Source: Macrostomum lignano
Lineage: Eukaryota
Direction of reading: 5' to 3'
DNA length: 50,947 bases
NCBI GenBank assembly: GCA_002269645.1
Contig: NIVC01004309.1
Span: forward strand, 1-50,947
A program made the translations under genes and the position numbers. Each line of letters opens with the position of its first letter. Position 1 is the stretch's first letter. Below are positions 11,725 to 48,361 of this stretch, one piece after another. The notes beneath the pieces were generated by a model, which was not told the origin of the DNA, did not search any database, and saw only the letters and a list, made by a program, of their open reading frames with translations.

Positions 11725-12260
11725 ATCGATCTGTTTTTTTCATCTCTAAAACTTGATTCGATTACCTGAAGGTTTAAACGTGGTGATCGCGTGATGTTGG
11801 CAATCATTAAAGTAGAGAGCGGAGAGCCAGAGTACTGCTCAATACAGAGGCAAAAATTTTACGGGGAAAAAGTGGTAAAAATATTATATAATAGAAATAA
11901 GTAAAACCTAATCAAATTGATGGCATCACTTTTGGACAATGAGAATTGCTAAAGAGGTGCTTCACTTGGTGTTTGATTTTGTTGTAAAAAATATTTTCTA
12001 TCCAAGCGTTCCATTTTCGATTACGGATCGCTATAATGTAGCGATAGAAAGCCGTAGCCGTTATTCATTTTTTATCACCGCAGACTGAACTTCAACACCC
12101 TCAATTGATAATATACCTATATGAGTCTAGACTCAAAAATTGTCAGATTTTATTTTGTATTATTATATTTTATGTGAGTAATTGGATTAGAAACTACTGG
12201 TTTACAAAAGTTTAAAAGGACAGAAAGAGGGACAGAGGAAGGGGGACAGAGGGAGAGGGA

Positions 12261-13335
12261 CAGAGTGAAACAGAGTGAAACAGAGTGAAACAGAGTGAAA
12301 CAGAGTGAAACAGAGTGAAACAGAGTGAAACAGAGTGAAACAGAGTGAAACAGAGTGAAACAGAGTGAAACAGAGTGAAACAGAGTGAAACAGAGTGAAA
12401 CAGAGTGAAACAGAGTGAAACAGAGTGAAACAGAGTGAAACAGAGTGAAACAGAGTGAAACAGAGTGAAACAGAGTGAAACAGAGTGAAACAGAGTGAAA
12501 CAGAGTGAAACAGAGTGAAACAGAGTGAAACAGAGTGAAGCAGAGTGAAACAGAGTGAAACAGAGTGAAACAGAGTGAAACAGAGTGAAACAGAGTGAAA
12601 CAGAGTGAAACAGAGTGAAACAGAGTGAAACAGAGTGAAACAGAGTGAAACAGAGTGAAACAGAGTGAAACAGAGTGAAACAGAGTGAAACAGAGTGAAA
12701 CAGAGTGAAACAGAGTGAAACAGAGTGAAACAGAGTGAAACAGAGTGAAACAGAGTGAAACAGAGTGAAACAGAGTGAAACAGAGTGAAACAGAGTGAAA
12801 CAGAGTGAAACAGAGTGAAACAGAGTGAAACAGAGTGAAACAGAGTGAAACAGAGTGAAACAGAGTGAAACAGAGTGAAACAGAGTGAAACAGAGTGAAA
12901 CAGAGTGAAACAGAGTGAAACAGAGTGAAACAGAGTGAAACAGAGTGAAACAGAGTGAAACAGAGTGAAACAGAGTGAAACAGAGTGAAACAGAGTGAAA
13001 CAGAGTGAAACAGAGTGAAACAGAGTGAAACAGAGTGAAACAGAGTGAAACAGAGTGAAACAGAGTGAAACAGAGTGAAACAGAGTGAAACAGAGTGAAA
13101 CAGAGTGAAACAGAGTGAAACAGAGTGAAACAGAGTGAAACAGAGTGAAACAGAGTGAAACAGAGTGAAACAGAGTGAAACAGAGTGAAACAGAGTGAAA
13201 CAGAGTGAAACAGAGTGAAACAGAGTGAAACAGAGTGAAACAGAGTGAAACAGAGTGAAACAGAGTGAAACAGAGTGAAACAGAGTGAAACAGAGTGAAA
13301 CAGAGTGAAACAGAGTGAAACAGAGTGAAACAGAG
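12261..13335. repeat. 10-bp satellite (CAGAGTGAAA) x107
   Basis: Near-perfect array with one variant unit at 12531-12540 (CAGAGTGAAG). Confidence 0.98.
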
Positions 13336-13668
13336 GCAGACAGATACAGACACAGCAGGAGAGAAGCAGTCCAGAAAAAGGCACTGAGGGAGTGGCAAAA
13401 GATTTGAAGCGAAGGTCTGCGTGGGCAGCCAGTGAGCAGTGAGATGTGGGAGCTGGCTGAGCGAGCTATTATAGGCCCAACTCCCTGGCGCAGGAGCAGG
13501 ATCTCACAATTCCCAGTCTGCGACTGCACTTGGCACCTCGTGCAGCCACAAACAGCAGCAATTTCTTTTAAAGAAGTTAATTCTCTCCACAATTTAATTT
13601 AATTTAAGCAACTTTCAAATCTGGGCTGCTTAGTTTAAAAAAAGTGACTTTCTGCCGTTGCTTCCGAA

Positions 13669-13732
13669 ATGCTGCTTCATCTGCGGCCTCAAGTGCTATT
13701 GCTGCTGACTCTGGCTTTGACTGCCACTAGCT
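13669..13732 (+). CDS. Neuropeptide prohormone, coding exon 1 (signal peptide)
   Basis: ATG...MLLHLRPQVLLLLTLALTATS + T, then consensus donor GTAAGT (phase 1). Basic residue followed by a hydrophobic core; phase matches exon 2. Confidence 0.8.
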
Positions 13733-13769
13733 GTAAGTATCGCTCATCTGGTCATATTGTCATGCCATG

Positions 13770-14125
13770 TTCTGCTCATCTGGTCATGTAATGGTCTACT
13801 AATCTAGTCATGTAATGGTCTACTCATCTAGTCATGTAATGGTCTACTCATCTAGTCATATAATGGTCTACTCATCTAGTCATGTAATGGTCTACTCATC
13901 TAGTCATGTAATGGTCTACTCATATTGTCATGTAATGGTCTGCTCATCTAGTCATGTAATGGTCTACTCATCTAGTCATGTAATGGTCTACTCATCTAGT
14001 CATGTAATGGTCTACTCATCTAGTCATGTAATGGTCTACTCATCTAGTCATGTAATGGTCTACTCATCTAGTCATGTAATGGTCTACTTATCTAGTCATG
14101 TAATGGGCTATTTATCTAGTCATTT
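13770..14125. repeat. 24-bp minisatellite (TCTACTCATCTAGTCATGTAATGG), ~15 copies, in intron 1
   Basis: Direct reading; source of ORF 13815-14261. Confidence 0.9.
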
Positions 14126-15041
14126 AATGCTTTGTTTATCCGCTTGTATCAGCAGCGCAATATTAGGCTTACTAAAGTATAATTCCTTTCCTAATTCATC
14201 TAAGCATGCCATCATCCGACAGTCTACTTATCTGTTCATCCATTATCTCCCAACAAAATAAGATTTCGTTGCAATTTTGACTGGGCTAAATTGCACACGA
14301 TCATAATTGATGCATCCACTCGATCCTATTGACAACTTCTTTAGATTGTTTTAATTGATGGCCCCTTAATCGCCAGCTTGTTAATAAATTTTCTACTCCC
14401 CAGTCAAACAGAAAATAACTTCCTCAGCGATTGCAGCGAGAAACCGAATCGGGACAGCTGTAGCGTGCCAGCCAGTCCCCCAGCAGCTCGTTAAAGAACT
14501 CACTAAAAGACATGATAAAATCTTAAGTGAGACAAATGCATTCTTCTTTACAACGTTGGCCTGCCCTAGCTGTCAGACTATGAATTATGAAGAGTACAAG
14601 AAAGGTTCTTCTCAGGCAGACTTGTTCGCCCGCACAGTTGATAATCTGATTTGTCTGTCTCTCTGTTTAGAATGCTATTGACGATCGTCCACGATGCCAT
14701 CCTGAACTCCATCTTTTTACTTCCATTTCGCACCTTCTCTGCCATTTAGAAACAATTTTTAACACATTTTCAAGCAAAGATTGAATAGTGCTTTCTCAAA
14801 ATTTTGTTGCTGCGGAATGCGTCAGAGTTTCAATGAGGAAGAGGAAGAGGATGAGGCGGCTGAGTAGTATCAAAATTTGCTCACGATCGAGTCCTAGTAG
14901 CGGTATTTGATACAATAAGTTTCATTGCTACATCGTCTTCAAAAAGACACTGTGTGCTGCAGTAAACACTGCATACTGATGTCCCTTCAGAAATTCTCTA
15001 CGCCATAGAAATTAGTTCAAGCTCGGTTTTTCTATGATAAT

Positions 15042-15169
15042 ACAATGGATAAATAATCAGCGGTCCCAGTGCGTGACAACGATTGTCTGGCGAGCGCCGG
15101 TAGGTTTTCTAGGCGCGAGCCATAGACAAATCGTTGTCACGTGCTGCGACCGCTGATTCTTTGCATTGT
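15042..15169. repeat. Imperfect palindrome (MITE-like)
   Basis: AATCAGCGGTC..GCGTGACAACGATTGTCT pairs with AGACAAATCGTTGTCACGTG..GACCGCTGATT. Confidence 0.75.
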
Positions 15170-15380
15170 TTTTCTGTTTGACGATCCTACAGACAATGCA
15201 TTGTTTGTAGTAATGGATTGTTATGCATTAAAAATGTGAATAATGATCGTCAAATTGCTAAACAATAACTTGGATGAAGAATTGTTCTGGTGGCAGCAAT
15301 AAAAACATGCTGTCCGAAAATTAGCGAATATACCCAAAAATGCGGAATTCACAGCCCTTCCTTCGCTTATCCTCTTTCAG

Positions 15381-15415
15381 ATAATGGGATCGCTTCAGCC
15401 GAGGAGAAAGCAGAC
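15381..15415 (+). CDS. Neuropeptide prohormone, coding exon 2 (35 nt)
   Basis: Acceptor CCTCTTTCAG, donor GAC|GTAAGA; encodes (Y)NGIASAEEKAD, phase 1 to phase 0. Confidence 0.75.
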
Positions 15416-15490
15416 GTAAGAGTGCCTGTAAATTACGAAAATTACGAATGTTCAATTGACTCAAGTGACTCAACTTGTTTTTTACTGCAG

Positions 15491-16255
15491 GTCCATTCGT
15501 TTGGTTGGAACTCGGTTGGCAGAAATGAACCTTCGGGTGACAAACTAACGCCTGTAGATGAGGCTGATCACATTGAAGCCAAAGAGAAGAAGTGGTTGGG
15601 AAATGGAATCAGGACCAAGCGCTGGCTTGGAGACGGGATCAGAACGAAGCGTTGGCTTGGAGACGGGATCAGGACCAAGCGCTGGCTTGGAGACGGGATC
15701 AGGACCAAGCGCTGGCTTGGAGACGGGATCAGGACCAAGCGCTGGCTTGGAGACGGGATCAGGACCAAACGTTGGCTCGGAGACGGGATCAGGACCAAAC
15801 GTTGGCTCGGAGACGGGATCAGGACCAAACGTTGGCTCGGAGACGGGATCAGGACCAAACGTTGGCTCGGAGACGGGATCAGGACGAAGCGCTGGCTCGG
15901 AGACGGGATCAGGACCAAACGTTGGCTCGGAGACGGGATCAGGACGAAGCGCTGGCTTGGAGACGGGATCAGGACCAAACGTTGGCTCGGAGACGGGATC
16001 AGGACCAAACGTTGGCTCGGAGACGGGATCAGGACGAAGCGCTGGCTTGGAGACGGGATCAGGACCAAACGTTGGCTCGGAGATGGGATCAGGACGAAGC
16101 GCTGGCTTGGAGATGGGATCAGGACCAAACGTTGGCTCGGAGATGGGATCAGGACCAAACGCTGGCTCGGAGACGGGATCAGGACCAAACGTTGGCTCGG
16201 AGACGGGATCAGGACCAAACGTTGGCTCGGAGACGGGATCAGGACAAAGCGCTGA
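15491..16255 (+). CDS. Neuropeptide prohormone, coding exon 3: spacer + 22 basic-site-flanked octapeptides (WLGNGIRT x1, WLGDGIRT x21)
   Basis: Acceptor TTTTACTGCAG. Spacer VHSFGWNSVGRNEPSGDKLTPVDEADHIEAKE-KK, then 22 x 30-nt units (15593-16252) each ending in KR, then TGA. Differences among the 21 D-type units are all at synonymous third positions. Confidence 0.9.
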   Translation, partial: VHSFGWNSVGRNEPSGDKLTPVDEADHIEAKEKKWLGNGIRTKRWLGDGIRTKRWLGDGIRTKRWLGDGIRTKRWLGDGIRTKRWLGDGIRTKRWLGDGIRTKRWLGDGIRTKRWLGDGIRTKRWLGDGIRTKRWLGDGIRTKRWLGDGIRTKRWLGDGIRTKRWLGDGIRTKRWLGDGIRTKRWLGDGIRTKRWLGDGIRTKRWLGDGIRTKRWLGDGIRTKRWLGDGIRTKRWLGDGIRTKRWLGDGIRTKR

Positions 16256-16530
16256 TCCTGAGGAATCGGTAAGATCTTTTGCGACGCGCTATAGAGCGCA
16301 GCATTTTTTAAACTTGCTTTTTTAACAGACACTGAATAGTAAATGCGTTGCTTTGGTTCATTTCAGATTGGAGCCACTGAAGCCTGCTGATCTTCTCAAG
16401 TGATTTTGATTTCAATGCGCTCAGCAGTGCACTGTTTTGAACTTTGAATTAAGGTGTCCTTGCAAAAACTTTGACACTTACAAACGAATCCCATCTTCAT
16501 TGCTGCCGCATATTATTCTATTTTCGGTTT

Positions 16531-16536
16531 AATAAA
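16531..16536 (+). promoter_or_regulatory. Candidate polyadenylation signal of the prohormone gene
   Basis: AATAAA ~280 nt after the stop. A possible 3'-UTR intron (GTAAGA at ~16269 to TTTCAG at ~16366) lies between. Confidence 0.4.
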
Positions 16537-19399: not shown

Positions 19400-20930
19400 G
19401 CTAATGCAATAATCGCTTTCTCAGGTTGTGCAACAATCCACGTCTCAGTGAGCGCAATAATCTCTTTTTTAGACAGCGCAATAATCAGCTTCTCAGCTAG
19501 TGCAATAATCCTTTACTCAACAAGTCCAAAAATCGATGTCTCAGCTAGTGCAATAGCCCTTTCTAATCTAGTGCAATAATCCTTGGCTTATCGAGTGCAA
19601 AAATCATTGGTTTATCAAGTGCAATATTCCTTGTTATCAAAGTGCGATAATCCTTGGCTTATCAAGTGCAATATTCTTTATTATCAAGTGCAATAATCCT
19701 TGGTTTATCAAGCGCAGTAATCTTTGGCTTATCAAGTGCAATAATCTTTGGTTTATCAAGCGCAGTAATCTTTGGCTTATCAAGTGCAATAATCTTTGGT
19801 TTATCAAGCGCAATAATCTTTGGTTTATCAAGCGCAGTAATCTTTGGCTTATCAAGTGCAATAATCTTTGGTTTATCAAGCGCAGTAATCTTTGGCTTAT
19901 CAAGTGCAATAATCATTGGCTTATCAAGTGCAATAATACTTGGTTTATCAAGCGCAGTAATCTTTGACTTATCAAGTGCAATAATCCTTGGTGTATCAAA
20001 TGCAATAATCTTTGGCTTATCAAGTGCAATAATCATTGGCTTATCAAGTGCAATAATCTTTGGTTTATCAAGCGCAGTAATCTTTGGCTTATCAAGTGCA
20101 ATAATCCTTGGTGTATCAAATGCAATAATCTTTGGCTTATCAAGTGCAATAATCATTGGCTTATCAAGTGCAATAATCCTTGGTTTATCAAGCGCAGTAA
20201 TCTTTGGCTTATCAAGTGCAAAAATCATTGGCTTATCAAGTGCAATAATCCTTGGTTTATCAAGCGCAGTAATCTTTGGCTTATCAAGTGCAATAATCTT
20301 TGTTTTATCAAGCGCAGTTATCTTTGGCTTATCAAGTGCAATAATCTTTGGTTTATCAAGCGCAGTAATCTTTGGCTTATCAAGTACAATAATCATTGGC
20401 TTATCAAGTGCAATAATCCTTGGTTTATCAAGTGCAAAAATCCTTACAGTAATCCTTGGTTTATTAAATGCAATAACCCTTGGTTTATCAAGTGCAGTAG
20501 TCCTTGGTTTATCAAGTGCAATTATCCTTGGCTTATCAAGTGCAGTAATCCTTGGTTTATCAAGCGCAGTAATCCTTGCTTTATTAAGTGCAATAATCCT
20601 TAGTTTATCAAGCACAGTAATCCTTGGTTTATCAAGTGCAATAATCCTTCCTTTATAAAGTGCAATAACCCTTGGTTTATCAAGTGCAATATTCCTTGAT
20701 TTATCAAGGGAAGTGATCCTTGGTTTATCAAGTGCAATAATCCTTAGTTTATCAAGTGCAATAATCCTTGGTTTATCAAGCGCAGTAATCCTTGGTTTAT
20801 CAAGTGCAGTAATCCTTGGTTTATCAAGTGCAATAATCCTTGGTTTATGAAGCGCAGTAATTCTTGGTTTATCAAGTGCAATAATCCTTGGTTTATCAAG
20901 TGCAGTAATGCTTGGTTTATCTAGCGCCAT
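19400..20930. repeat. 24-bp minisatellite (TTATCAAGTGCAATAATCCTTGGT), ~60 copies, inside unit A
   Basis: Direct reading; source of ORFs 19654-20658 and 19662-20930. Confidence 0.9.
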
Positions 20931-20971
20931 AATTCAGGTCTTTTTAATTAGTTTTTAATAAAAGCTAATAA

Positions 20972-24893: not shown

Positions 24894-26082
24894 GCGTATG
24901 CGCCCCAAATGTACTCTAGCTTAGAACACCAACAGCCGTTCACTCGCACCTCCTCCAGATAGTTGGACATTGAGAATGGGTTTGTGTAACTTAATGTGCA
25001 GAGCTTCAAGAATGTTAAGTTTATGCTCATTTTTGCTGTTGTCTATGACCTTGAAATGAGAGGTTATGTCTGGCTCATCACAACAACCATGGCATTGCAG
25101 CAAATGTTCCTGAATCGGAGAGTTTCGTTGCCTATGTTCCTTGGCTCTCGTGAGTAGGTGTCGCTTGGTTTTACCAATGTAGGTAATGCTCTGGTCAACA
25201 GAGCAACGAAAACGATAGATGACACCTGCCTTGAGAGCACATGGAACACGAGACTTTAAACTGCCAACGAATTGACTGACTTTATGAGTACGGAACAGTA
25301 CATGAATCTTAGTCTTAAAGAATTTTTGGCAAGTTTTGCGAATTTGCCTCTTGTGCCCCAGGGAATGGAAGACGAGAGTCATTCGTTGTCTGCTTCATCG
25401 GGCCTATACAGTATGTTGCTCTTGGTCGTTGCTGCACAACGAGTTTACCAACATTATCAATATTCTCACTGCCAATGGATACCCTATTAACTACATCATG
25501 AAGGTTATTGGTAATTTCTTAGATGAAAAAATTGAAAAAAAGCTTAAGCCTAAACGGCCAGATAGAGAACCAGGAGAACCAATCTTGACTCTTCCGTTTT
25601 TGGGCAACTCTTCGATTGTGTTTAAGAGGCAAATTCGCAAAACTTGCCAAAAATTCTTTAAGACTAAGATTCATGTAGTGTTCCGTACTCATAAAGTCAG
25701 TCAATTCGTTGGCAGTTTAAAGTCTCGTGTTCCATGTGCTCTCAAGGCAGGTGTCATCTATCGTTTTCGTTGCTCTGTTGACCAGAGCATTACCTACATT
25801 GGTAAAACCAAGCGACACCTACTCACGAAAGCAAAGGAACATAGGCAACGAAACTCTCCGATTCAGGAACATTTGCTGCAATGCCATGGTTGTTGTGATG
25901 AGCCAGACATAACCTCTCATTTCAAGGTCATAGACAACAGCAAAAATGAGCATAAACTTAACATTCTTGAAGCTCTGCACATTAAGTTACACAAACCCAT
26001 TCTCAATGTCCAACTATCTGGAGGAGGTGCGAGTGAACGGCTGTTGGTGTTCTAAGCTAGAGTACATTTGGGGCGCATACGC

Positions 26083-26934: not shown

Positions 26935-27456
26935 TATTGATCGGAGGGCGACAAAATCAGCCATATATGCTTTGGCACTGCAGTCAAATACACAGCAGTG
27001 ATAGGCTGCTTAGTGCACGGGTTGTATGCAGGCAGAGCCAATGCGCAGTTAAGTAAAATCTATAAATTAGATTTAAGTCTGGAGGAACTAATTCACAGTC
27101 TGCAGTTCTTCTGTGGCCGGCACCTCAATCCCCTCAGAAAACTGCAATTTGCTCAGAATTGTACGGCTCACTAATCAATTTTCGATACATATCGGCAGTC
27201 TTGAAAAGCTCAGCATTTAGCAGCATTGTCTGCAGTTTAGTAATTTCGTACTTTTATGGAGCTAGACAATACCCATTGATGGGATCAGTTATACTCGAAG
27301 CAGTTTTTACAAATCAAATTTGATTAGTGGCTAGTGCCGAGTAGCAAAAAATGAATTGCTAATTAATAAAAAAATTTTCAATTGAAATTAAATAAAAAAT
27401 GTTTCAATTAGTCCAGGCACAAGCTATAAATTATTGAATTATTTGAATTTTTATTA

Positions 27457-27540
27457 TCCGCCGGGGAGGCAGACTCGAACCTTGGACCTTACGTCTAGCC
27501 TAAACCTAGTCCTAAGTGCCTACACTGCGGCTACTCCGCC
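27457..27540 (-). other. tRNA-like cassette inside Helitron unit B
   Basis: GGCGGAGTAGCCGCAGTGTAGG...CCAAGGTTCGAGTCTGCCTCCCCGGCGGA. Confidence 0.6.
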
Positions 27541-28733
27541 TATTGATAGGAGGACAACAAAATCAGCCATATATGCTTCAGAACTGCAGTTAAAATACAT
27601 AGCAGTGATAGGCTGCTCAGTGTGTAGGCGTGCAGGCGGAGCCAATGCACAGTTGATTGATTGAAATCTATAAATAGCAATTTTCTATGGAGTCCGCCAG
27701 TCAGAGCCAGGGTCAGAATGTACACACGCAGCCACTGAGCATTTTTTCTGCACTGAGCAGCCACTGAGCAGTCCAGTCAAGAATTCAAGCTAGTTTGCCC
27801 TACCATTAAAAGCATTGGGAAAACTCGTTTTTCGAATATTTAATACCTTTAGCATTAAAGCCGATTAAAGAAATTTTAACTGTCTTCTTTCCTGATAATT
27901 ACAAATCTTTTCGTAAAAACGCGATTAAAATTGTTCAATTGGTTCTATCTCTAGAACGTTATGCAAATACTAACACAAATTATCTTCGAGTGAAAGTCAC
28001 ACGAAGCAGCTATGACATAATCAAATACTCAGGCAGTCAGCATCAGTCTCAATTAAAGTTAGCAATATGGTTACGCAATTTCTGTCTTTCAACTTGGCAC
28101 AGTGTTTTCAACTTGTTGTGATGCAATCTTTATCAAAATCAGAATTCAGTCAGTCGGTTTTTTCTCTAGCATTCTTACAGCGCATTTCAAGTCGAAAGAG
28201 CTGCTTGACCTTTGCAAAAAAGCATGTTTTTCGAATATTTAATCCCTTTAGCATTGAAGCAGATCAAAGAAATTTTAACCATACAATCCTGGGCTGATTA
28301 CAAATCTTTTGGTGAAAACGCAATCAAAATCGGTGAAGAATTGCAATCTCTAGAGCGTTATGGACAAGCAAGCAAGCATACAAATATTAGAGATTTAGTA
28401 TATTTCCCCTCAGAAAACTGCAATTTGCTCAGAATTGTACGGCTCACTAATCAATTTTCGATACATATCGGCAGTCTTGAAAAGCTCAGCATTTAGCAGC
28501 ATTGTCTGCAGTTTAGTAATTTCGTACTTTTATGGAGCTAGACAATACCCATTGATGGGATCAGTTATACTCGAAGCAGTTTTTACAAATCAAATTTGAT
28601 TAGTGGCTAGTGCCGAGTAGCAAAAAATGAATTGCTAATTAATAAAAAAAATTTTCAATTGAAATTAAATAAAAAATGTTTCAATTAGTCCAGGCACAAG
28701 CTATAAATTATTGAATTATTTGAATTTTTATTA

Positions 28734-28817
28734 TCCGCCGGGGAGGCAGACTCGAACCTTGGACCTTACGTCTAGCCTAAACCTAGTCCTAAGTGCCTAC
28801 ACTGCGGCTACTCCGCC
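28734..28817 (-). other. tRNA-like cassette (duplicate of 27457-27540)
   Basis: Identical copy within the 1277-bp duplication. Confidence 0.6.
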
Positions 28818-30214
28818 TATTGATAGGAGGACAACAAAATCAGCCATATATGCTTCAGAACTGCAGTTAAAATACATAGCAGTGATAGGCTGCTCAGTGT
28901 GTAGGCGTGCAGGCGGAGCCAATGCACAGTTGATTGATTGAAATCTATAAATAGCAATTTTCTATGGAGTCCGCCAGTCAGAGCCAGGGTCAGAATGTAC
29001 ACACGCAGCCACTGAGCATTTTTTCTGCACTGAGCAGCCACTGAGCAGTCCAGTCAAGAATTCAAGCTAGTTTGCCCTACCATTAAAAGCATTGGGAAAA
29101 CTCGTTTTTCGAATATTTAATACCTTTAGCATTAAAGCCGATTAAAGAAATTTTAACTGTCTTCTTTCCTGATAATTACAAATCTTTTCGTAAAAACGCG
29201 ATTAAAATTGTTCAATTGGTTCTATCTCTAGAACGTTATGCAAATACTAACACAAATTATCTTCGAGTGAAAGTCACACGAAGCAGCTATGACATAATCA
29301 AATACTCAGGCAGTCAGCATCAGTCTCAATTAAAGTTAGCAATATGGTTACGCAATTTCTGTCTTTCAACTTGGCACAGTGTTTTCAACTTGTTGTGATG
29401 CAATCTTTATCAAAATCAGAATTCAGTCAGTCGGTTTTTTCTCTAGCATTCTTACAGCGCATTTCAAGTCGAAAGAGCTGCTTGACCTTTGCAAAAAAGC
29501 ATGTTTTTCGAATATTTAATCCCTTTAGCATTGAAGCAGATCAAAGAAATTTTAACCATACAATCCTGGGCTGATTACAAATCTTTTGGTGAAAACGCAA
29601 TCAAAATCGGTGAAGAATTGCAATCTCTAGAGCGTTATGGACAAGCAAGCAAGCATACAAATATTAGAGATTTAGTATATTTAGATAGAAGACTAGCCAT
29701 TTAGCCCCCCGCTGGGGAGCCTTGAAAATGACACCAATTGGTTTTTATTTTGGCATAAGAGTAACCTTACTATAATCGTCCAGAATATTGATTTCCATTA
29801 ATCAAAAATTACCTTTTCTCATTTTGGCAGAAATAAATTGCCATTAATCCGAACTTTCATTAGCCAAAAAAGTTTCCTTCATCAGCCCAAAACCCTTTCT
29901 AAATCAGCAAATAGTGCTTATCCTTTCAAGCACAAACTCTTGATGGATATCGTCACTGGCCGGGGCATATTCTGATCCGCAGCAGGAGCTCAATATGCAA
30001 ATCCCTGACGTCCTTAGACCCTCTCTCTTTATTAGCCTAAATCAAAGAATCAAACCTTTAATGAATGCGCTGGTATTTCCTATCAGCAGAAATCAGCATT
30101 ACTTTTGTGTACTATTTCATTTTTTGAATTACATGAGCTACTTGAGCTGTACTACCTGACTATCTGACAATCGCCTAACAATCTAACACCCCGCTCCAAC
30201 AATTCAGCCATTGT

Positions 30215-35389: not shown

Positions 35390-37520
35390 GCTCTGGTGCC
35401 TGCCTTACCTCATTAGCTGTCTGTCTTCTCTCGCTTGGTGTCTGTCCTCTCTCATTTGATGTCTGTCCTCTCTCATTTGATGTCTGTCCTCTCTCATTTG
35501 GTGTCTGTCCTCTCTCATTTGGTGTCTGTCGTCTCTCATTTGGTGTCTGTCCTCTCTCATTTGGTATCTGTATTCTCTCATTTGATGTCTGTCCTCTCTC
35601 ATTTGGTGTCTGTCCTCTCTCATTTGGTGTCTGTCCTCTCTCATTTGGTATCTGTCCTCTCTCATTTGATGTCTGTCCTCTCTCATTTGGTGTCTGTCCT
35701 CTCTCATTTGATGTCTGTCTTCTCTCATTTGATGTCTGTCTTCTCTCATTTGATGTCTGTCCTCTCTCATTTGGTATCTGTCCTCTCTCATTTGGTATCT
35801 GTCCTCTCTCAGTTGGTGTCTGTCCTCTCTCATTTGATGTCTGTCCCCTCTCTTATTTGGTGTCTGTCTCTCTCATTTGGTATCTGTCCTCTCTCATTTG
35901 ATGTCTGTCCTCTCTCATTTGATGTCTGTCCTCTCTCATTTGATGTCTGTCCTCTCTCATTTAGTGTCTTTCCTCTCTCATTTGATGTCTGTCCTCTCTC
36001 ATTTGATGTCTGTCCTCTCTCATTTGATGTCTGTCCTCTCTCATTTGATGTCTGTCCTCTCTCATTTGATGTCTGTCCTCTCTCATTTGGTATCTGTCGT
36101 CTCTCATTTGGTGTCTGTCCTCTCTCATTTGATGTCTTTCCTCTCTCATTTGGTATCTGTCCTCTCTCATTTGATGTCTGTCCTCTCTCATTTGGTGTCT
36201 GTCCTCTCTCATTTGATGTCTGTCCTCTCTCATTTGATGTTTGTCCTCTCTCATTTGGTGTCTGTCCTCTCTCATTTGATGTCTGTCCTCTCTCATTTGA
36301 TGTCTGTCCTCTCTCATTTGATGTCTGTCCTCTTCTCATTTGGTGTCTTTCCTCTCTCATTTGGTATCTGTCCTCTCTCATTTGATGTCTGTCCTCTCTC
36401 ATTTGATGTCTGTCCTCTCTCATTTGATGTCTGTCCTCTCTCATTTGATGTCTGTCCTCTCTCATTTGATGTCTGTCCTCTCTCATTTGATGTCTGTCCT
36501 CTCTCATTTGATGTCTGTCCTCTCTCATTTGATGTCTGTCCTCTCTCATTTAGTGTCTGTCCTCTCTCATTTGATGTCTGTCCTCTCTCATTTGATGTCT
36601 GTCCTCTCTCATTTGGTGTCTGTCCTCTCTCATTTGATGTCTGTCCTCTCTCATTTGATGTCTGTCCTCTCTCATTTGGTATCTGTCGTCTCTCATTTGG
36701 TGTCTGTCCTCTCTCATTTGATGTCTTTCCTCTCTCATTTGGTATCTGTCGTCTCTCATTTGATGTCTGTCCTCTCTCATTTGATGTCTGTCCTCTTTCA
36801 TTTGATGTCTGTCCTCTTTCATTTGGTGTCTGTCCTCTCTCATTTGGTGTCTGTCCTCTCTCATTTGATGTCTGTCCTCTCTCATGTGATGTCTGTCCTC
36901 TCTCATTTGATGCCTGTCCTCTCTCATTTGGTATCTGTCGTCTCTCATTTGGTGTCTGTCCTCTCTTATTTGATGTCTGTCCTCTCTCATTTGATGTCTG
37001 TCCTCTTTCATTTGATGTCTTTCCTCTCTCATTTGGTATCTGTCGTCTCTCATTTGGTGTCTGTCCTCTCTCATTTGATGTCTGTCCTCTCTCATTTGAT
37101 GTATGTCCTCTCTCATTTGATGTCTGTCCTCTTCTCATTTGATGTCTGTCCTCTCTCATTTGGTGTCTGTCCTCTCTCATTTGATGTCTGTCCTCTCTCA
37201 TTTGATGTCTGTCCTCTCTCATTTGGTGTCTGTCCTCTCTCATTTGATGTCTTTCCTCTCTCATTTGATGTCTTTCCTCTCTCATTTGATGTCTGTCCTC
37301 TCTCATTTGGTGTCTGTCCTCTCTCATTTGATGTCTTTCCTCTCTCATTTGGTATCTGTCGTCTCTCATTTGGTGTCTGTCCTCTCTCATTTGATGTCTG
37401 TCCTCTCTCATTTGATGTCTGTCCTCTCTCATTTGATGTCTGTCCTCTTTCATTTGATGTCTGTCCTCTCTCATTTGGTGTCTGTCCTCTCTCATTTGAT
37501 GTCTGTCCTCTCTCATTTGA
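35390..37520. repeat. 21-bp minisatellite (TCTGTCCTCTCTCATTTGATG), ~100 copies
   Basis: Direct reading; source of all ORFs in 35380-37584. Confidence 0.97.
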
Positions 37521-38242
37521 TTCTTTCGTTTTATTTGATCAGTCTATAAATCATTGTACTACGCGCTCGTACTCCTCATTTTAGACATAAAAATAATGCT
37601 CAGACTTAAACAGAGAAAACTTTAATCAGTTGAATTTCTTCTCGTCCCAAATTATAGCCAACTGAAGTTTGGAGTGGATTGCTTGCCTGCAAACCCTCTC
37701 ATTTCGGCAGTGTGTCGTCAAGCCATTGTGCCAAGCCAACGACCATTGTACTATTTTCGCAAACAAGCGGTCGCTCAGTGAAGGTAAGACGCCTTGTTGA
37801 AAAAAAATTATTAAGAAAACCTTGCGCTACTGAGGAACTTTCTCTAGGAGGAACTTGCCAACAAGCCACAAGAAGCTGAGGTAACTCAGTCTGCAGAAGA
37901 GTCCAGAGGAAGAAAATTGGAATCATTTTTTTGCCGCACACAACGGGCAAAAAATTCAAGCATCCGACATCAGTTCTCAGCTGGGGAAGGCTGACATGTT
38001 TGCATTTGCTAAAACTATTTCTCTGCCACTCACTCTCCAGCTCTCTTTGGTGGACGCTCTGTTGACACAGCAAGGTGCAGCGGCTCGGGCGTGGGCCACC
38101 CACCGACCGCGCGGTTGAAACCAAAATTCTTTCACTGCAACTCAGCACCCAGTCTGCGGCCACCAAAAGCATACAAGCTAAGCAGCTTATATCTTCAGCT
38201 TAAGTAGAAACTATCCTAGGTTGTTTCTTCAACTGAAGATAC

Positions 38243-42530: not shown

Positions 42531-43356
42531 CAGGGGTTGGCAAGCTCTGGCCCGCAAAGCCTCTCCATCCGGCCCTCGGGTCCTTTGAAACTTCACAATA
42601 GCAATCCGATCCGCACAAGGTTTGCATCTCCTCTCAGCTCTATTCTCTCACCTCACCTCATCTTATCTGCTCTCTTCTCCTCTCTCCCCTCTCCTCTCCT
42701 CTCCTCTCCTCTCCTCTCCTCTCCTCTCCTCTCCTCTCCTCTCCTCTCCTCTCCTCTCCTCTCCTCTCCTCTCCTCTCCTCTCCTCTCCTCTCCTCTCCT
42801 CTCCTCTCCTCTCCTCTCCTCTCCTCTCCTCTCCTCTCCTCTCCTCTCCTCTCCTCTCCTCTCCTCTCCTCTCCTCTCCTCTCCTCTCCTCTCCTCTTCT
42901 CTCCTCTCCTCTCCTCTCCTCTCCTCTCCTCTCCTCTCCTCTCCTCTCCTCTCCTCTTCTCTCCTCTCCTCTCCTCTCCTCTCCTCTCCTCTCCTCTCCT
43001 CTCCTCTCCTCTCCTCTCCTCTCCTCTCTCCTCTCCTCTCCTATCCTCTCCTCTCCTCTCCTCTCCTCTCCTCTTCTCTTCTCTCCTCTTCTCTCCTCTC
43101 CTCTCTCCTCTCCTCTCCTCTCCTCTCCTCTCCTCTCCTCTCCTCTCCTCTCCTCTCCTCTCCTCTCCTCTCCTCTCCTCTCCTCTCCTCTCCTCTCCTC
43201 TCCTCTCCTCTCCTCTCCTCTCCTCTCCTCTCCTCTCATCTCTTTACTCGTATTCCTAGCCTCTTCTTTCTCCTATCTCTCTTCTCTGTTCCCTCTCTTC
43301 TCTCCCTTCCTCTGGCCGGCAGTTGGCCCTTTAGGTAAAAAGTTTTCCAACCCCTG
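42531..43356. mobile_element. hAT-type MITE with internal (CTCCT)n expansion
   Basis: TIRs CAGGGGTTGG...CCAACCCCTG; 8-bp TSD ATTTACGC / ATTTAAGC (7 of 8 match); subterminal GGCCCG motifs. Confidence 0.85.
42670..43238. repeat. (CTCCT)n pentanucleotide microsatellite
   Basis: Direct reading. Confidence 0.97.
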
Positions 43357-43969: not shown

Positions 43970-44480
43970 ATGAAGATTCGGAAGAGGTGCCTCGTGGGGA
44001 TTCGGAGGTGTACCGAGAAAATTCGGAGATGGTGCTACGTCAAGATTCGGAGGTGATGCTACGTCAAGATTCGGAGGTGGTGCTACGTCAAGATTCGGAG
44101 GTGGTGCTACGTCAAGATTCGGAGGTGGTGCTACGTCAAGATTCGGAGGTGGTGCTACGTCGAGATTCGGAGGTGGTGCTACGTCAAGATTCGGAGGTGG
44201 TGCTACGTCAAGATTCGGAGGTGATGCTACGTCAAGATTCGGAGGTGGTGCTACGTCAAGATTCGGAGGTAGTGCTACGTCAAGATTCGGAGGTGATGCT
44301 ACGTCAAGATTCGGAGGTAGTGCTACGTCAAGATTCGGAGGTGGTGCTACGTCAAGATTCGGAGGTAGTGCTACGTCAAGATTCGGAGGTGATGCTATGT
44401 CAAGATTCGGAGGTGGTGCTACGTCAAGATTCGGAGGTGATGCTACGTCAAGATTCGGAGGTGATGCTACGTCAAGATTT
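43970..44480. repeat. 24-bp minisatellite (CAAGATTCGGAGGTGGTGCTACGT), ~20 copies
   Basis: Direct reading; unit variants include non-synonymous changes (GTG/ATG). Confidence 0.9.
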
Positions 44481-47683: not shown

Positions 47684-47805
47684 CCCTACTGATGCGATGA
47701 ACATAGCCGATGATCTTAAAAGTTGCGCTGACGTGAATCAAAAGGGTAAATATGCCTTAGAATTTATGAATAAGTTTTGCGTGCTGCGATCCAACCGCTC
47801 TCCAG

Positions 47806-48361
47806 ATACGTCAGCAGCCTGTCTCTGGAACTGCGCCAGGTCAAATCAAACGGCTGCTATTATTTCGCCGCCGATTCGTCCTATCCAGACGACAAGTTAA
47901 GCGATAGCGACGGCGATGACGACGACGATGACGGTGTCAGCCTGGCCAGCTCGGAGCCCATCGACCGGCTTTGGCCGGCGGCCGCAAAACTCGCCGCCGA
48001 CATGTCGATGTCGCCAGACGAGGTCGACGGAGCGCCGGCGGACCTGTTGGCGGCGCAACTGCTCGAACGTTTAGCTGACAACGATCTGTCCGGAGCGATT
48101 CGTCACTGCCGACTGCTGCTCACCTTCCAGCCGCATAGCGGAGAGGCTCGCGAGCTGCTGGCCACCCTGTCGGAGCGCGACCAGCAGCAGCGAGACGATC
48201 TGCTCGAGTCGAACTCGGAATCGACGGACACCGAATCGGAGACCTACTTCAGATACTTTCACCACGATCAGCACGGTCGGAATGAGGACGAGGCGGAGAG
48301 TAGGCGGACTTCGTCTGACGCGTCGGATCACTTTCTAGATGCTTCGTCGTCCTCTGACTGA
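47806..48361 (+). CDS. ERICH2: ERICH2-like (glutamate-rich protein 2-like) terminal coding exon
   Basis: GC-rich ORF with acidic tracts flanking APADLLAAQLLERLADNDLSGAIRHCRLLLTFQPHSGEARELLATLSE. This resembles the ERICH2 core APxxL...AxxxCxxILx[YF][EQ]PxxxEAxE as recalled from memory, with no search run. Acceptor CTCTCCAG at 47805; TGA at 48359-48361. Confidence 0.6.

Follow-up and report, generated by a model that had tools for sequence, protein, structure and literature searches.

Gene structure

Contig NIVC01004309.1 of the flatworm Macrostomum lignano (GenBank assembly GCA_002269645.1) was analyzed over positions 1 to 50,947 of the forward strand, and this whole stretch of 50,947 nucleotides (nt) is called the window here. 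Our analysis centers on positions 13669 to 16255, which very probably hold a functional but unannotated protein-coding gene of three exons, the predicted product of which carries 22 tandem copies of an octapeptide, WLGDGIRT. When segments 13669-13732, 15381-15415, and 15491-16255 were joined in silico, they gave 864 nt in frame, that is, 287 amino acids (aa) and a stop codon. The predicted product reads MLLHLRPQVLLLLTLALTATS from exon 1, YNGIASAEEKAD from exon 2, and VHSFGWNSVGRNEPSGDKLTPVDEADHIEAKE-KK-WLGNGIRT-KR-(WLGDGIRT-KR)x21 from exon 3. An earlier reading of the same DNA, referred to below as the original prediction, had proposed this splice model and this array running to the stop codon; the model was reproduced exactly, with an in-frame join, consensus donors, and CAG acceptors, and the spliced translation confirmed the array.

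All of the features of the gene lie on the plus strand. The coding part of exon 1 (13669-13732) contains the ATG, the signal-peptide core MLLHLRPQVLLLLTLALTATS, and the first base of codon 22, and it ends at a perfect GTAAGT donor at 13733. Intron 1 (13733-15380; 1,648 nt, phase 1) runs from this donor to CCTTCGCTTATCCTCTTTCAG, and the acceptor of exon 2, a pyrimidine-rich CAG, reads CCTCTTTCAG followed by AT at 15381. Exon 2 (15381-15415) is only 35 nt long, encodes (Y)NGIASAEEKAD (YNGIASAEEKAD) with the likely signal-peptidase sites, and is followed by a GTAAGA donor at 15416. Intron 2 (15416-15490; 75 nt, phase 0) ends in TTGTTTTTTACTGCAG, and the acceptor of exon 3, again a pyrimidine-rich CAG, reads TTTTTTACTGCAG followed by GT at 15491. 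The coding part of exon 3 (15491-16255) supplies the acidic spacer VHSFGWNSVGRNEPSGDKLTPVDEADHIEAKE, the KK pair, the 22-copy array, and the TGA stop codon at 16253-16255. Read from the spliced frame, KK, the first dibasic cleavage site, lies before copy 1 at 15587-15592, and the array occupies 15593-16252 as 22 units of 30 nt, each encoding W-L-G-[D/N]-G-I-R-T-K-R, with WLGNGIRT as copy 1 and WLGDGIRT as copies 2 to 22.

Because exons 2 and 3 contain no in-frame ATG, leaving the methionine of exon 1 as the only one in the spliced sequence, an upstream start exon is required, and the original prediction was right to call for a separate signal-peptide exon. Within the 4.4 kb upstream, 13669-13732 was the only one of 125 in-phase ATG...GT first-exon candidates with a donor matching GTAAGT at at least five of six positions. 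Trans-splicing onto the exon-2 acceptor of a spliced leader ending in ATG was considered and rejected, since the frame would not be kept. A putative M. lignano spliced-leader sequence has no occurrence in the window. The 321-aa open reading frame (ORF) 15290-16255 reads straight through intron 2, and because this intron is in frame and stop-free, it may be retained; a two-exon form of this kind would have a spacer 25 residues longer and would leave the signal peptide and the peptides unaltered. From these sequence features, we infer that the gene is transcribed and spliced as drawn.

The N terminus encoded by exon 1 appears to be signal-like and cleavable. Its hydrophobic h-region is VLLLLTLALTA, with a 9-residue Kyte-Doolittle maximum of 3.12 at VLLLLTLAL, and R6 lies in the n-region. 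With small residues at positions -3 and -1, the (-3,-1) rule is satisfied both by ATS/Y (cleavage after S21) and by ASA/E (cleavage after A-S-A28), and signal peptidase would likely cut at one of these two sites. Exons 1 and 2 meet where the signal peptide ends, a common arrangement in secretory-peptide genes.

The flanks of the predicted gene hold candidate control elements at what would be sensible places, namely, a TATA-like element (TATTATAGG) at 13467-13475, which precedes the ATG by about 195 nt, and a possible AATAAA polyadenylation signal at 16531-16536, 276 nt past the stop codon. An array of (ACAGAGTGAA) at 12260-13335 (107.6 copies, 99% identity) stops about 330 nt short of the start codon and adjoins the putative promoter, with the TATA-like element just downstream. 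Variation in array length could affect expression. Just past the stop codon stands a donor-like GGTAAGA, with an acceptor-like TTCATTTCAG 100 nt downstream (16267-16366), and these could delimit an intron in the 3' untranslated region.

Coding signature of the array

A tandem array such as this could also be no gene at all but a 30-nt minisatellite that is open by chance, or a recently dead pseudogene. The window is dense in minisatellites, with 79 rows of Tandem Repeats Finder (TRF) output in 51 kb, and TRF describes the array itself as a repeat with a period of 30 nt, 21.3 copies, and 92% matches. Moreover, stops are absent from five of its six frames, so its openness is no evidence by itself, and the high similarity of the units might stem from recent expansion and not from selection.

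The pattern of variation, however, argues against a noncoding or dead array. Read in the WLGDGIRTKR frame, the units show 35 synonymous and no nonsynonymous codon differences from their consensus, compared with the 7 synonymous and 23 nonsynonymous sites that each unit offers. Within copies 2 to 22, all six variable columns are third positions, which by chance would be expected with a probability of (7/30)^6, or approximately 1.6e-4, and the sole amino acid change among the units is that of D to N in copy 1. This synonymous-only variation extends to the lysine and arginine codons of the junctions. Upstream of the repeats, the coding frame continues into the nonrepetitive acidic spacer and then, via two consensus splice junctions, to the signal peptide, and homologous arrays in the same register, also with an acidic spacer, exist in M. 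lignano database proteins (see below). The octapeptide and its KR sites are under purifying selection, and we regard a chance minisatellite or a dead gene as an extremely improbable explanation.

Every other minisatellite with a period of 21, 24, or 30 nt in the window was analyzed in the same way, and none had an open frame in which synonymous differences prevailed. The antisense frame of the array shows 30 synonymous and 5 nonsynonymous differences, a pattern that is the expected geometric echo of the sense frame because the third positions of the two frames coincide. For this reason, and in view of its five nonsynonymous changes and its lack of an ATG and of a signal peptide, antisense ORF 15568-16332 was rejected as a candidate gene. 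No second gene for dibasic-flanked repeated peptides was found in the window.

Relatives among Macrostomum lignano proteins

An exhaustive HMMER (phmmer) scan of the exon-3 product against 1.84 billion representative proteins, followed by a motif filter and inspection of the listed matches, yielded three true relatives among the 150 matches listed, all of them UniProt entries from M. lignano, with E values from 1.3e-49 to 5.9e-11. A0A1I8IJ38 (E = 1.3e-49) reads ...SGYDDDERLT-KK-(W[IL]GDGFRS-KK)x11; A0A1I8FF56 (E = 4.9e-38) has WLSDGFRN-KK units that are interrupted by frameshifts; and A0A1I8FXQ2, labeled "Secreted protein" in UniProt, reads ...GVHEVADYRQET-KK-(WLSDGFRN-KK)x4, its spacer ending in HEVADYRQET. 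The arrays of A0A1I8IJ38 and A0A1I8FF56 are embedded in chimeric models under the UniRef name "ANK_REP_REGION domain-containing protein," and two of the three relatives are chimeric or frameshifted gene models. The other inspected matches, such as bacterial repeats of the form GISGSGIRPK and the string NLGTGIRIKR, were rejected as unrelated repeat proteins.

Like the WLGDGIRT precursor, the three entries carry tandem W-[LI]-[GS]-D-G-F-R-[SN] peptides in the same register, each with a dibasic pair, behind an acidic spacer that ends in KK; the site before the array reads ...ET-KK-W or ...LT-KK-W, matching the KK that precedes copy 1 in the window. They differ from it in having Phe at position 6, Ser or Asn at position 8, and KK as the dibasic pair, whereas the gene described here has Ile, Thr, and KR. 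The arrays are 50 to 63% identical, BLASTP gives an E value of 4e-15 with an alignment that reaches the acidic spacer, and local alignments score 13 to 15 standard units (z) against shuffled sequences. Across repeat copies 2 to 5 of a three-way alignment, W, D, G, R, and the first basic residue never vary, while copy 1 has N in the window sequence and D in the Macrostomum sequences. By these comparisons, the gene is a member of an as-yet-unnamed Macrostomum group of WLxDGxR repeats (W[LI][GS]DG[FI]R), which so far comprises this gene and the Macrostomum entries.

Spacer similarity to the relatives could not be detected beyond about 15 residues, and in a tblastn search of the window with the chimeric M. 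lignano proteins, the peptide array was the only part matched, which provides no evidence of synteny. The full spliced protein had 0 matches in a word-indexed homology search, which missed the relatives because they share too few exact 5-mers with it. Two metagenome scans, run with the single protein and with the three-way alignment, respectively, gave no match. Pfam contained no family for the precursor, the sole match, to DAB2_SBM, being a repeat artifact with no stretch passing by itself. Exact-sequence look-ups gave no record for the 321-aa ORF, for three other ORFs of the window, or for M. lignano proteins P0001 and P0049, and they yielded no genomic locus for the relatives.

The original prediction had suggested that WLGDGIRT may be undescribed. 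That part of the claim stands for the literature, as neither the octapeptide nor its substrings occur in a full-text collection of 8.3 million texts; it has to be qualified for the databases, given the three M. lignano entries with W[LI][GS]DGFR[SN]-KK arrays. The searchable literature likewise held no WLSDGFR, no W[IL]GDGFR, and no substrings of these, no Macrostomum neuropeptide catalogue was found in it, and it contains no description of A0A1I8IJ38, A0A1I8FF56, or A0A1I8FXQ2.

Precursor design and cleavage sites

The predicted precursor has the features of a prohormone, with a signal-like N terminus, an acidic spacer, KK before copy 1, and KR after 22 of 22 copies, as the original prediction had recognized. 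Amidation by PAM needs a C-terminal glycine. Because no glycine precedes KR, the peptides are predicted to be nonamidated, again in agreement with the earlier reading. The octapeptide is near-neutral, with an isoelectric point (pI) of 5.8, and the predicted [M+H]+ values are 917.484 for WLGDGIRT and 916.500 for WLGNGIRT.

Such a protein might instead be secreted and remain uncleaved, with the WLGDGIRTKR decamer serving as an intact polymer in, e.g., matrix, mucus, or adhesive, and many repeat-rich secreted proteins are indeed found in flatworm genomes of this type. A structural polymer is, however, at odds with the dibasic pair being strictly kept at every unit boundary, as KR here and as KK in Macrostomum, with the presence of KK before copy 1, and with a precursor that is small (287 aa) and has neither cysteine nor a structural domain in Pfam. 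Since variation in the Lys and Arg codons is purely synonymous and the basic pair is kept in the Macrostomum relatives (as KK), the junctions are better understood as functional cleavage sites than as part of a structural repeat, and we hold an uncleaved polymer to be very unlikely.

The same overall design is known from other systems. The precursors of FMRFamide, pedal peptide/orcokinin, and the cnidarian GLWamides carry multiple copies of short peptides between dibasic sites behind a signal peptide, and in such multicopy invertebrate precursors, the copies are homogenized by unequal crossing-over and differ synonymously. The WLGDGIRT gene shares this architecture but has no sequence relationship to these invertebrate families, most of which undergo amidation or end in different C-terminal motifs, whereas WLGDGIRT is nonamidated. 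Fungal alpha-factor-type precursors also contain Kex2-processed tandem peptides, many of which start with Trp and which are nonamidated, and they carry Ste13 spacer dipeptides (EA/DA). The WLGDGIRT precursor resembles them in its signal sequence and in its short, tandem, Trp-initial, nonamidated peptides after KR, but only in design; the Ste13 dipeptides (EA/DA; X-Ala/X-Pro) are absent here, and Trp follows KR directly. Given this absence, the 1,648-nt intron, the animal-type Penelope-like remnants in the window, and the flatworm homologs, the gene was rejected as a fungal alpha-factor-type precursor.

Comparison with the 1020HH and npp-27 peptides

The likeness to planarian 1020HH peptides that the original prediction had pointed out is real at the level of the motif, as seen in YLTGGIRY, YSYLKGGIRW, and VPPYITGGIRY (PMC2953531). 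In the planarian, Smed-1020HH-1 yields YSYLKGGIRW, ...RYLKGGIRW, and NYLKGGLRF, and Smed-1020HH-2 yields QSYLTGGIRY and YLTGGIRY (Collins et al. 2010, PMC2953531). Mass spectrometry confirmed YLTGGIRY, QSYLTGGIRY, and YSYLKGGIRW as nonamidated 8- to 10-mers, and the schistosome peptide of npp-27 (Sma/Sja-npp-27), VPPYITGGIRY, is nonamidated as well (PMC2953531). The precursors are small and consist of a signal peptide, an acidic spacer, and KR/KK-flanked peptides (PMC2953531, Tables S2, S3, S5, and S8). Within the family, the expression pattern is known for Smed-1020HH-1 and Smed-1020HH-2 only; these are expressed in the cephalic ganglia and nerve cords, and upon pc2 RNA interference, the mass signal of one 1020HH-2 peptide fell to 0.64 of the control, with a P value of 0.0547 (PMC2953531).

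The WLGDGIRT precursor shares with these prohormones the order of its parts. In each case, the precursor is small, and its C-terminal end holds short free-acid peptides preceded by an acidic spacer. Both peptide types appear to be restricted to flatworms. Their common 8-residue core is aromatic-[LI]-x-x-G-[ILF]-R-x, as in YLTGGIRY, YLKGGIRW, and YITGGIRY compared with WLGDGIRT. From the strict motif Y-[LI]-x-G-G-[IL]-R-[YWF], by contrast, WLGDGIRT departs, although it agrees in L2, G5, I6, and R7 and likewise begins with an aromatic residue. The 1020HH peptides start with Tyr, have Gly-Gly at positions 4 and 5, and end in an aromatic residue, whereas WLGDGIRT has Trp, Asp-Gly (with Asn in copy 1), and Thr at these places, and the copy number is 1 to 3 in 1020HH precursors but 22 here.

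Statistically, the link to 1020HH and npp-27 is suggestive. Single-comparison BLASTP searches against the 1020HH/npp-27 precursors gave E values of 2e-4 and 4e-4, and Smith-Waterman alignment gave z values of about 4 with P values of 0.004 to 0.006 (2,000 shuffles), which would not survive correction for about 50 prohormone families; three control planarian prohormones scored z values of -1.4 to 1.9. Because the similarity is not significant once some 50 families are allowed for, homology is unproven, and the gene would work like a 1020HH-type prohormone but is not a demonstrated member of the 1020HH/npp-27 family. Were the link real, the gene would belong, in divergent and amplified form, to a flatworm family already known and would not represent a new peptide-receptor system. 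We put forward with considerable reserve, as an idea that is more doubtful than not, that the W-[LI]-x-D-G-[IF]-R-x octapeptides of this gene and of Macrostomum constitute an undescribed flatworm neuropeptide family, an early-branching, high-copy counterpart of planarian, trematode, and cestode 1020HH/npp-27. The publications consulted on 1020HH and on schistosome neuropeptide receptors assign no receptor to 1020HH/npp-27, npp-27 is not mentioned in those among them on the deorphanization of schistosome G protein-coupled receptors (GPCRs), and a literature search for GGIRY-type strings returned only noise.

A predicted neuropeptide prohormone

Considering these data, we propose that the gene probably encodes a secreted, convertase-processed, nonamidated multicopy flatworm neuropeptide prohormone of an undescribed peptide type. 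In this scenario, the signal peptide encoded by exon 1 would direct the 287-aa precursor into the endoplasmic reticulum and would be cleaved off close to the exon 1/2 junction, following S21 or ASA28. A PC2/PC1-type subtilisin-like convertase of the regulated secretory pathway would then cut after KK66-67 and after each KR, and a carboxypeptidase E-type enzyme would remove the basic residues. The products would be 21 copies of WLGDGIRT, one of WLGNGIRT, and the acidic N-terminal propeptide, the octapeptides staying free acids as they have no C-terminal glycine. Once released, the octapeptides would act on a receptor, either a GPCR or a peptide-gated channel. Dibasic cleavage, neuronal expression, and receptor signaling of the WLGDGIRT precursor are all predictions, and in going from a secreted, cleaved peptide to a neuropeptide acting on a receptor, we infer rather than observe.

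That last step is where a different reading enters: the gene may be real and its product secreted and cleaved, but by constitutive furin processing in a gland, epidermal, or reproductive cell. The exported peptide could then be, for example, a pheromone or attractant, an antimicrobial or defensive peptide, or a seminal or adhesive-gland product. RXKR is the furin consensus, and because every junction, reading R-T-K-R/W, fits it, constitutive nonneuronal processing is possible; a high copy number would suit bulk export, and the Macrostomum relatives carry no functional annotation. On the other hand, the Macrostomum junctions, FRSKK and FRNKK (R-S-K-K and R-N-K-K), are not furin sites, and since the relatives use plain KK, the RXKR reading is not conserved in the family. 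Being near-neutral and 8 residues long, the peptide would furthermore make a poor antimicrobial, and the closest described peptides by motif, those of 1020HH/npp-27, are neuronal. We consider a nonneuronal product unlikely, though clearly less so than an uncleaved polymer.

Several points weigh against a neuropeptide prohormone. The signal peptide was judged only from hydrophobicity and the (-3,-1) rule. With furin-type R-T-K-R at the junctions, the processing machinery itself does not point to neurons, and the C-terminal Thr and the Asp at position 4 are unlike those of every described 1020HH/npp-27 peptide. Finally, an exact-sequence look-up showed the spliced protein to be absent from a collection of 15 billion sequences, so that no independent gene model backs our own.

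If the W-[LI]-x-D-G-[IF]-R-x octapeptides are indeed an early-branching counterpart of 1020HH/npp-27, this would tie together a hitherto orphan, flatworm-restricted ligand family across free-living and parasitic lineages and would provide a simple, easily synthesized free-acid ligand for deorphanizing flatworm-specific GPCRs. Flatworm neuropeptides and their receptors are relevant to regeneration and behavior in free-living species and are candidate anthelmintic targets in parasites. If WLxDGxR is the macrostomid counterpart of 1020HH/npp-27, the sequence range of that family would be widened, and an abundant, unmodified octapeptide would be at hand to test. What is new is the peptide sequence; the architecture of signal peptide, spacer, and dibasic-flanked copies is a textbook one, and the conceptual gain is therefore small, useful for flatworm neuropeptide catalogues but unsurprising to a specialist. 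The locus also holds a lesson for annotation, as genes like this one are lost when the exon for the signal peptide sits 1.6 kb ahead of an ORF without an ATG, and their database relatives are hidden in chimeric models named after ankyrin repeats.

Genomic context

Intron 1 contains two further features. A 24-nt minisatellite at 13752-14129 (about 16 copies, 94% match) starts 20 nt past the exon-1 donor and has no coding signature, one near-open frame being mostly nonsynonymous and the other frames being full of stops. At 15051-15162 lies a near-perfect hairpin with 34-nt arms that are 88% complementary; it is single copy in the window, and a 126-nt RNA across it folds at -72.4 kcal/mol (z = -10.1 versus shuffles). 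The hairpin matched no Rfam family and could be a foldback or miniature inverted-repeat transposable element-like insertion or an intronic hairpin RNA. The window as a whole contains no tRNA genes and no Rfam matches.

Large arrays occupy 35409-37521, 42666-43242, 19499-20933, and 44021-44479, listed as 21 nt x100, TCTCC x115, 24/48 nt x40-60, and 24 nt x19, and none of them has a coding signature; along with the 79 TRF rows, they mark the genome as unusually rich in satellites. ORF 47774-48358 on the plus strand (195 codons, acidic and Ser-rich) looks coding and may be an orphan exon; it has no homolog among 5.8 billion proteins and no Pfam match. At 27392-28600 and 28669-29880, a segment of about 1.28 kb is duplicated in tandem, with identical stop-to-stop ORFs in both copies, and related fragments at 6.7 to 7.2, 21.3 to 21.6, and 33.1 to 34.4 kb make it look like a dispersed repeat family.

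The surroundings of the gene are animal-like in their 1.6-kb intron, their interstitial TTAGGG-type repeat, and their remnants of Penelope-like elements with GIY-YIG and HTH_animal domains. The telomeric-type repeat, (CTAACC)x5 at 901-930, fits an animal other than an arthropod or nematode, flatworms included. Head-to-head GIY-YIG ORFs at 24924-25394 (minus strand) and 25306-26052 (plus strand) are nearly identical over their C-terminal approximately 149 residues, with two differences, and look like Penelope-like retroelement remnants in inverted arrangement. The best database relative of the Penelope-like ORF, at 51% identity (Logan run SRR31628435), has reverse transcriptase, HTH_animal, and GIY-YIG domains.

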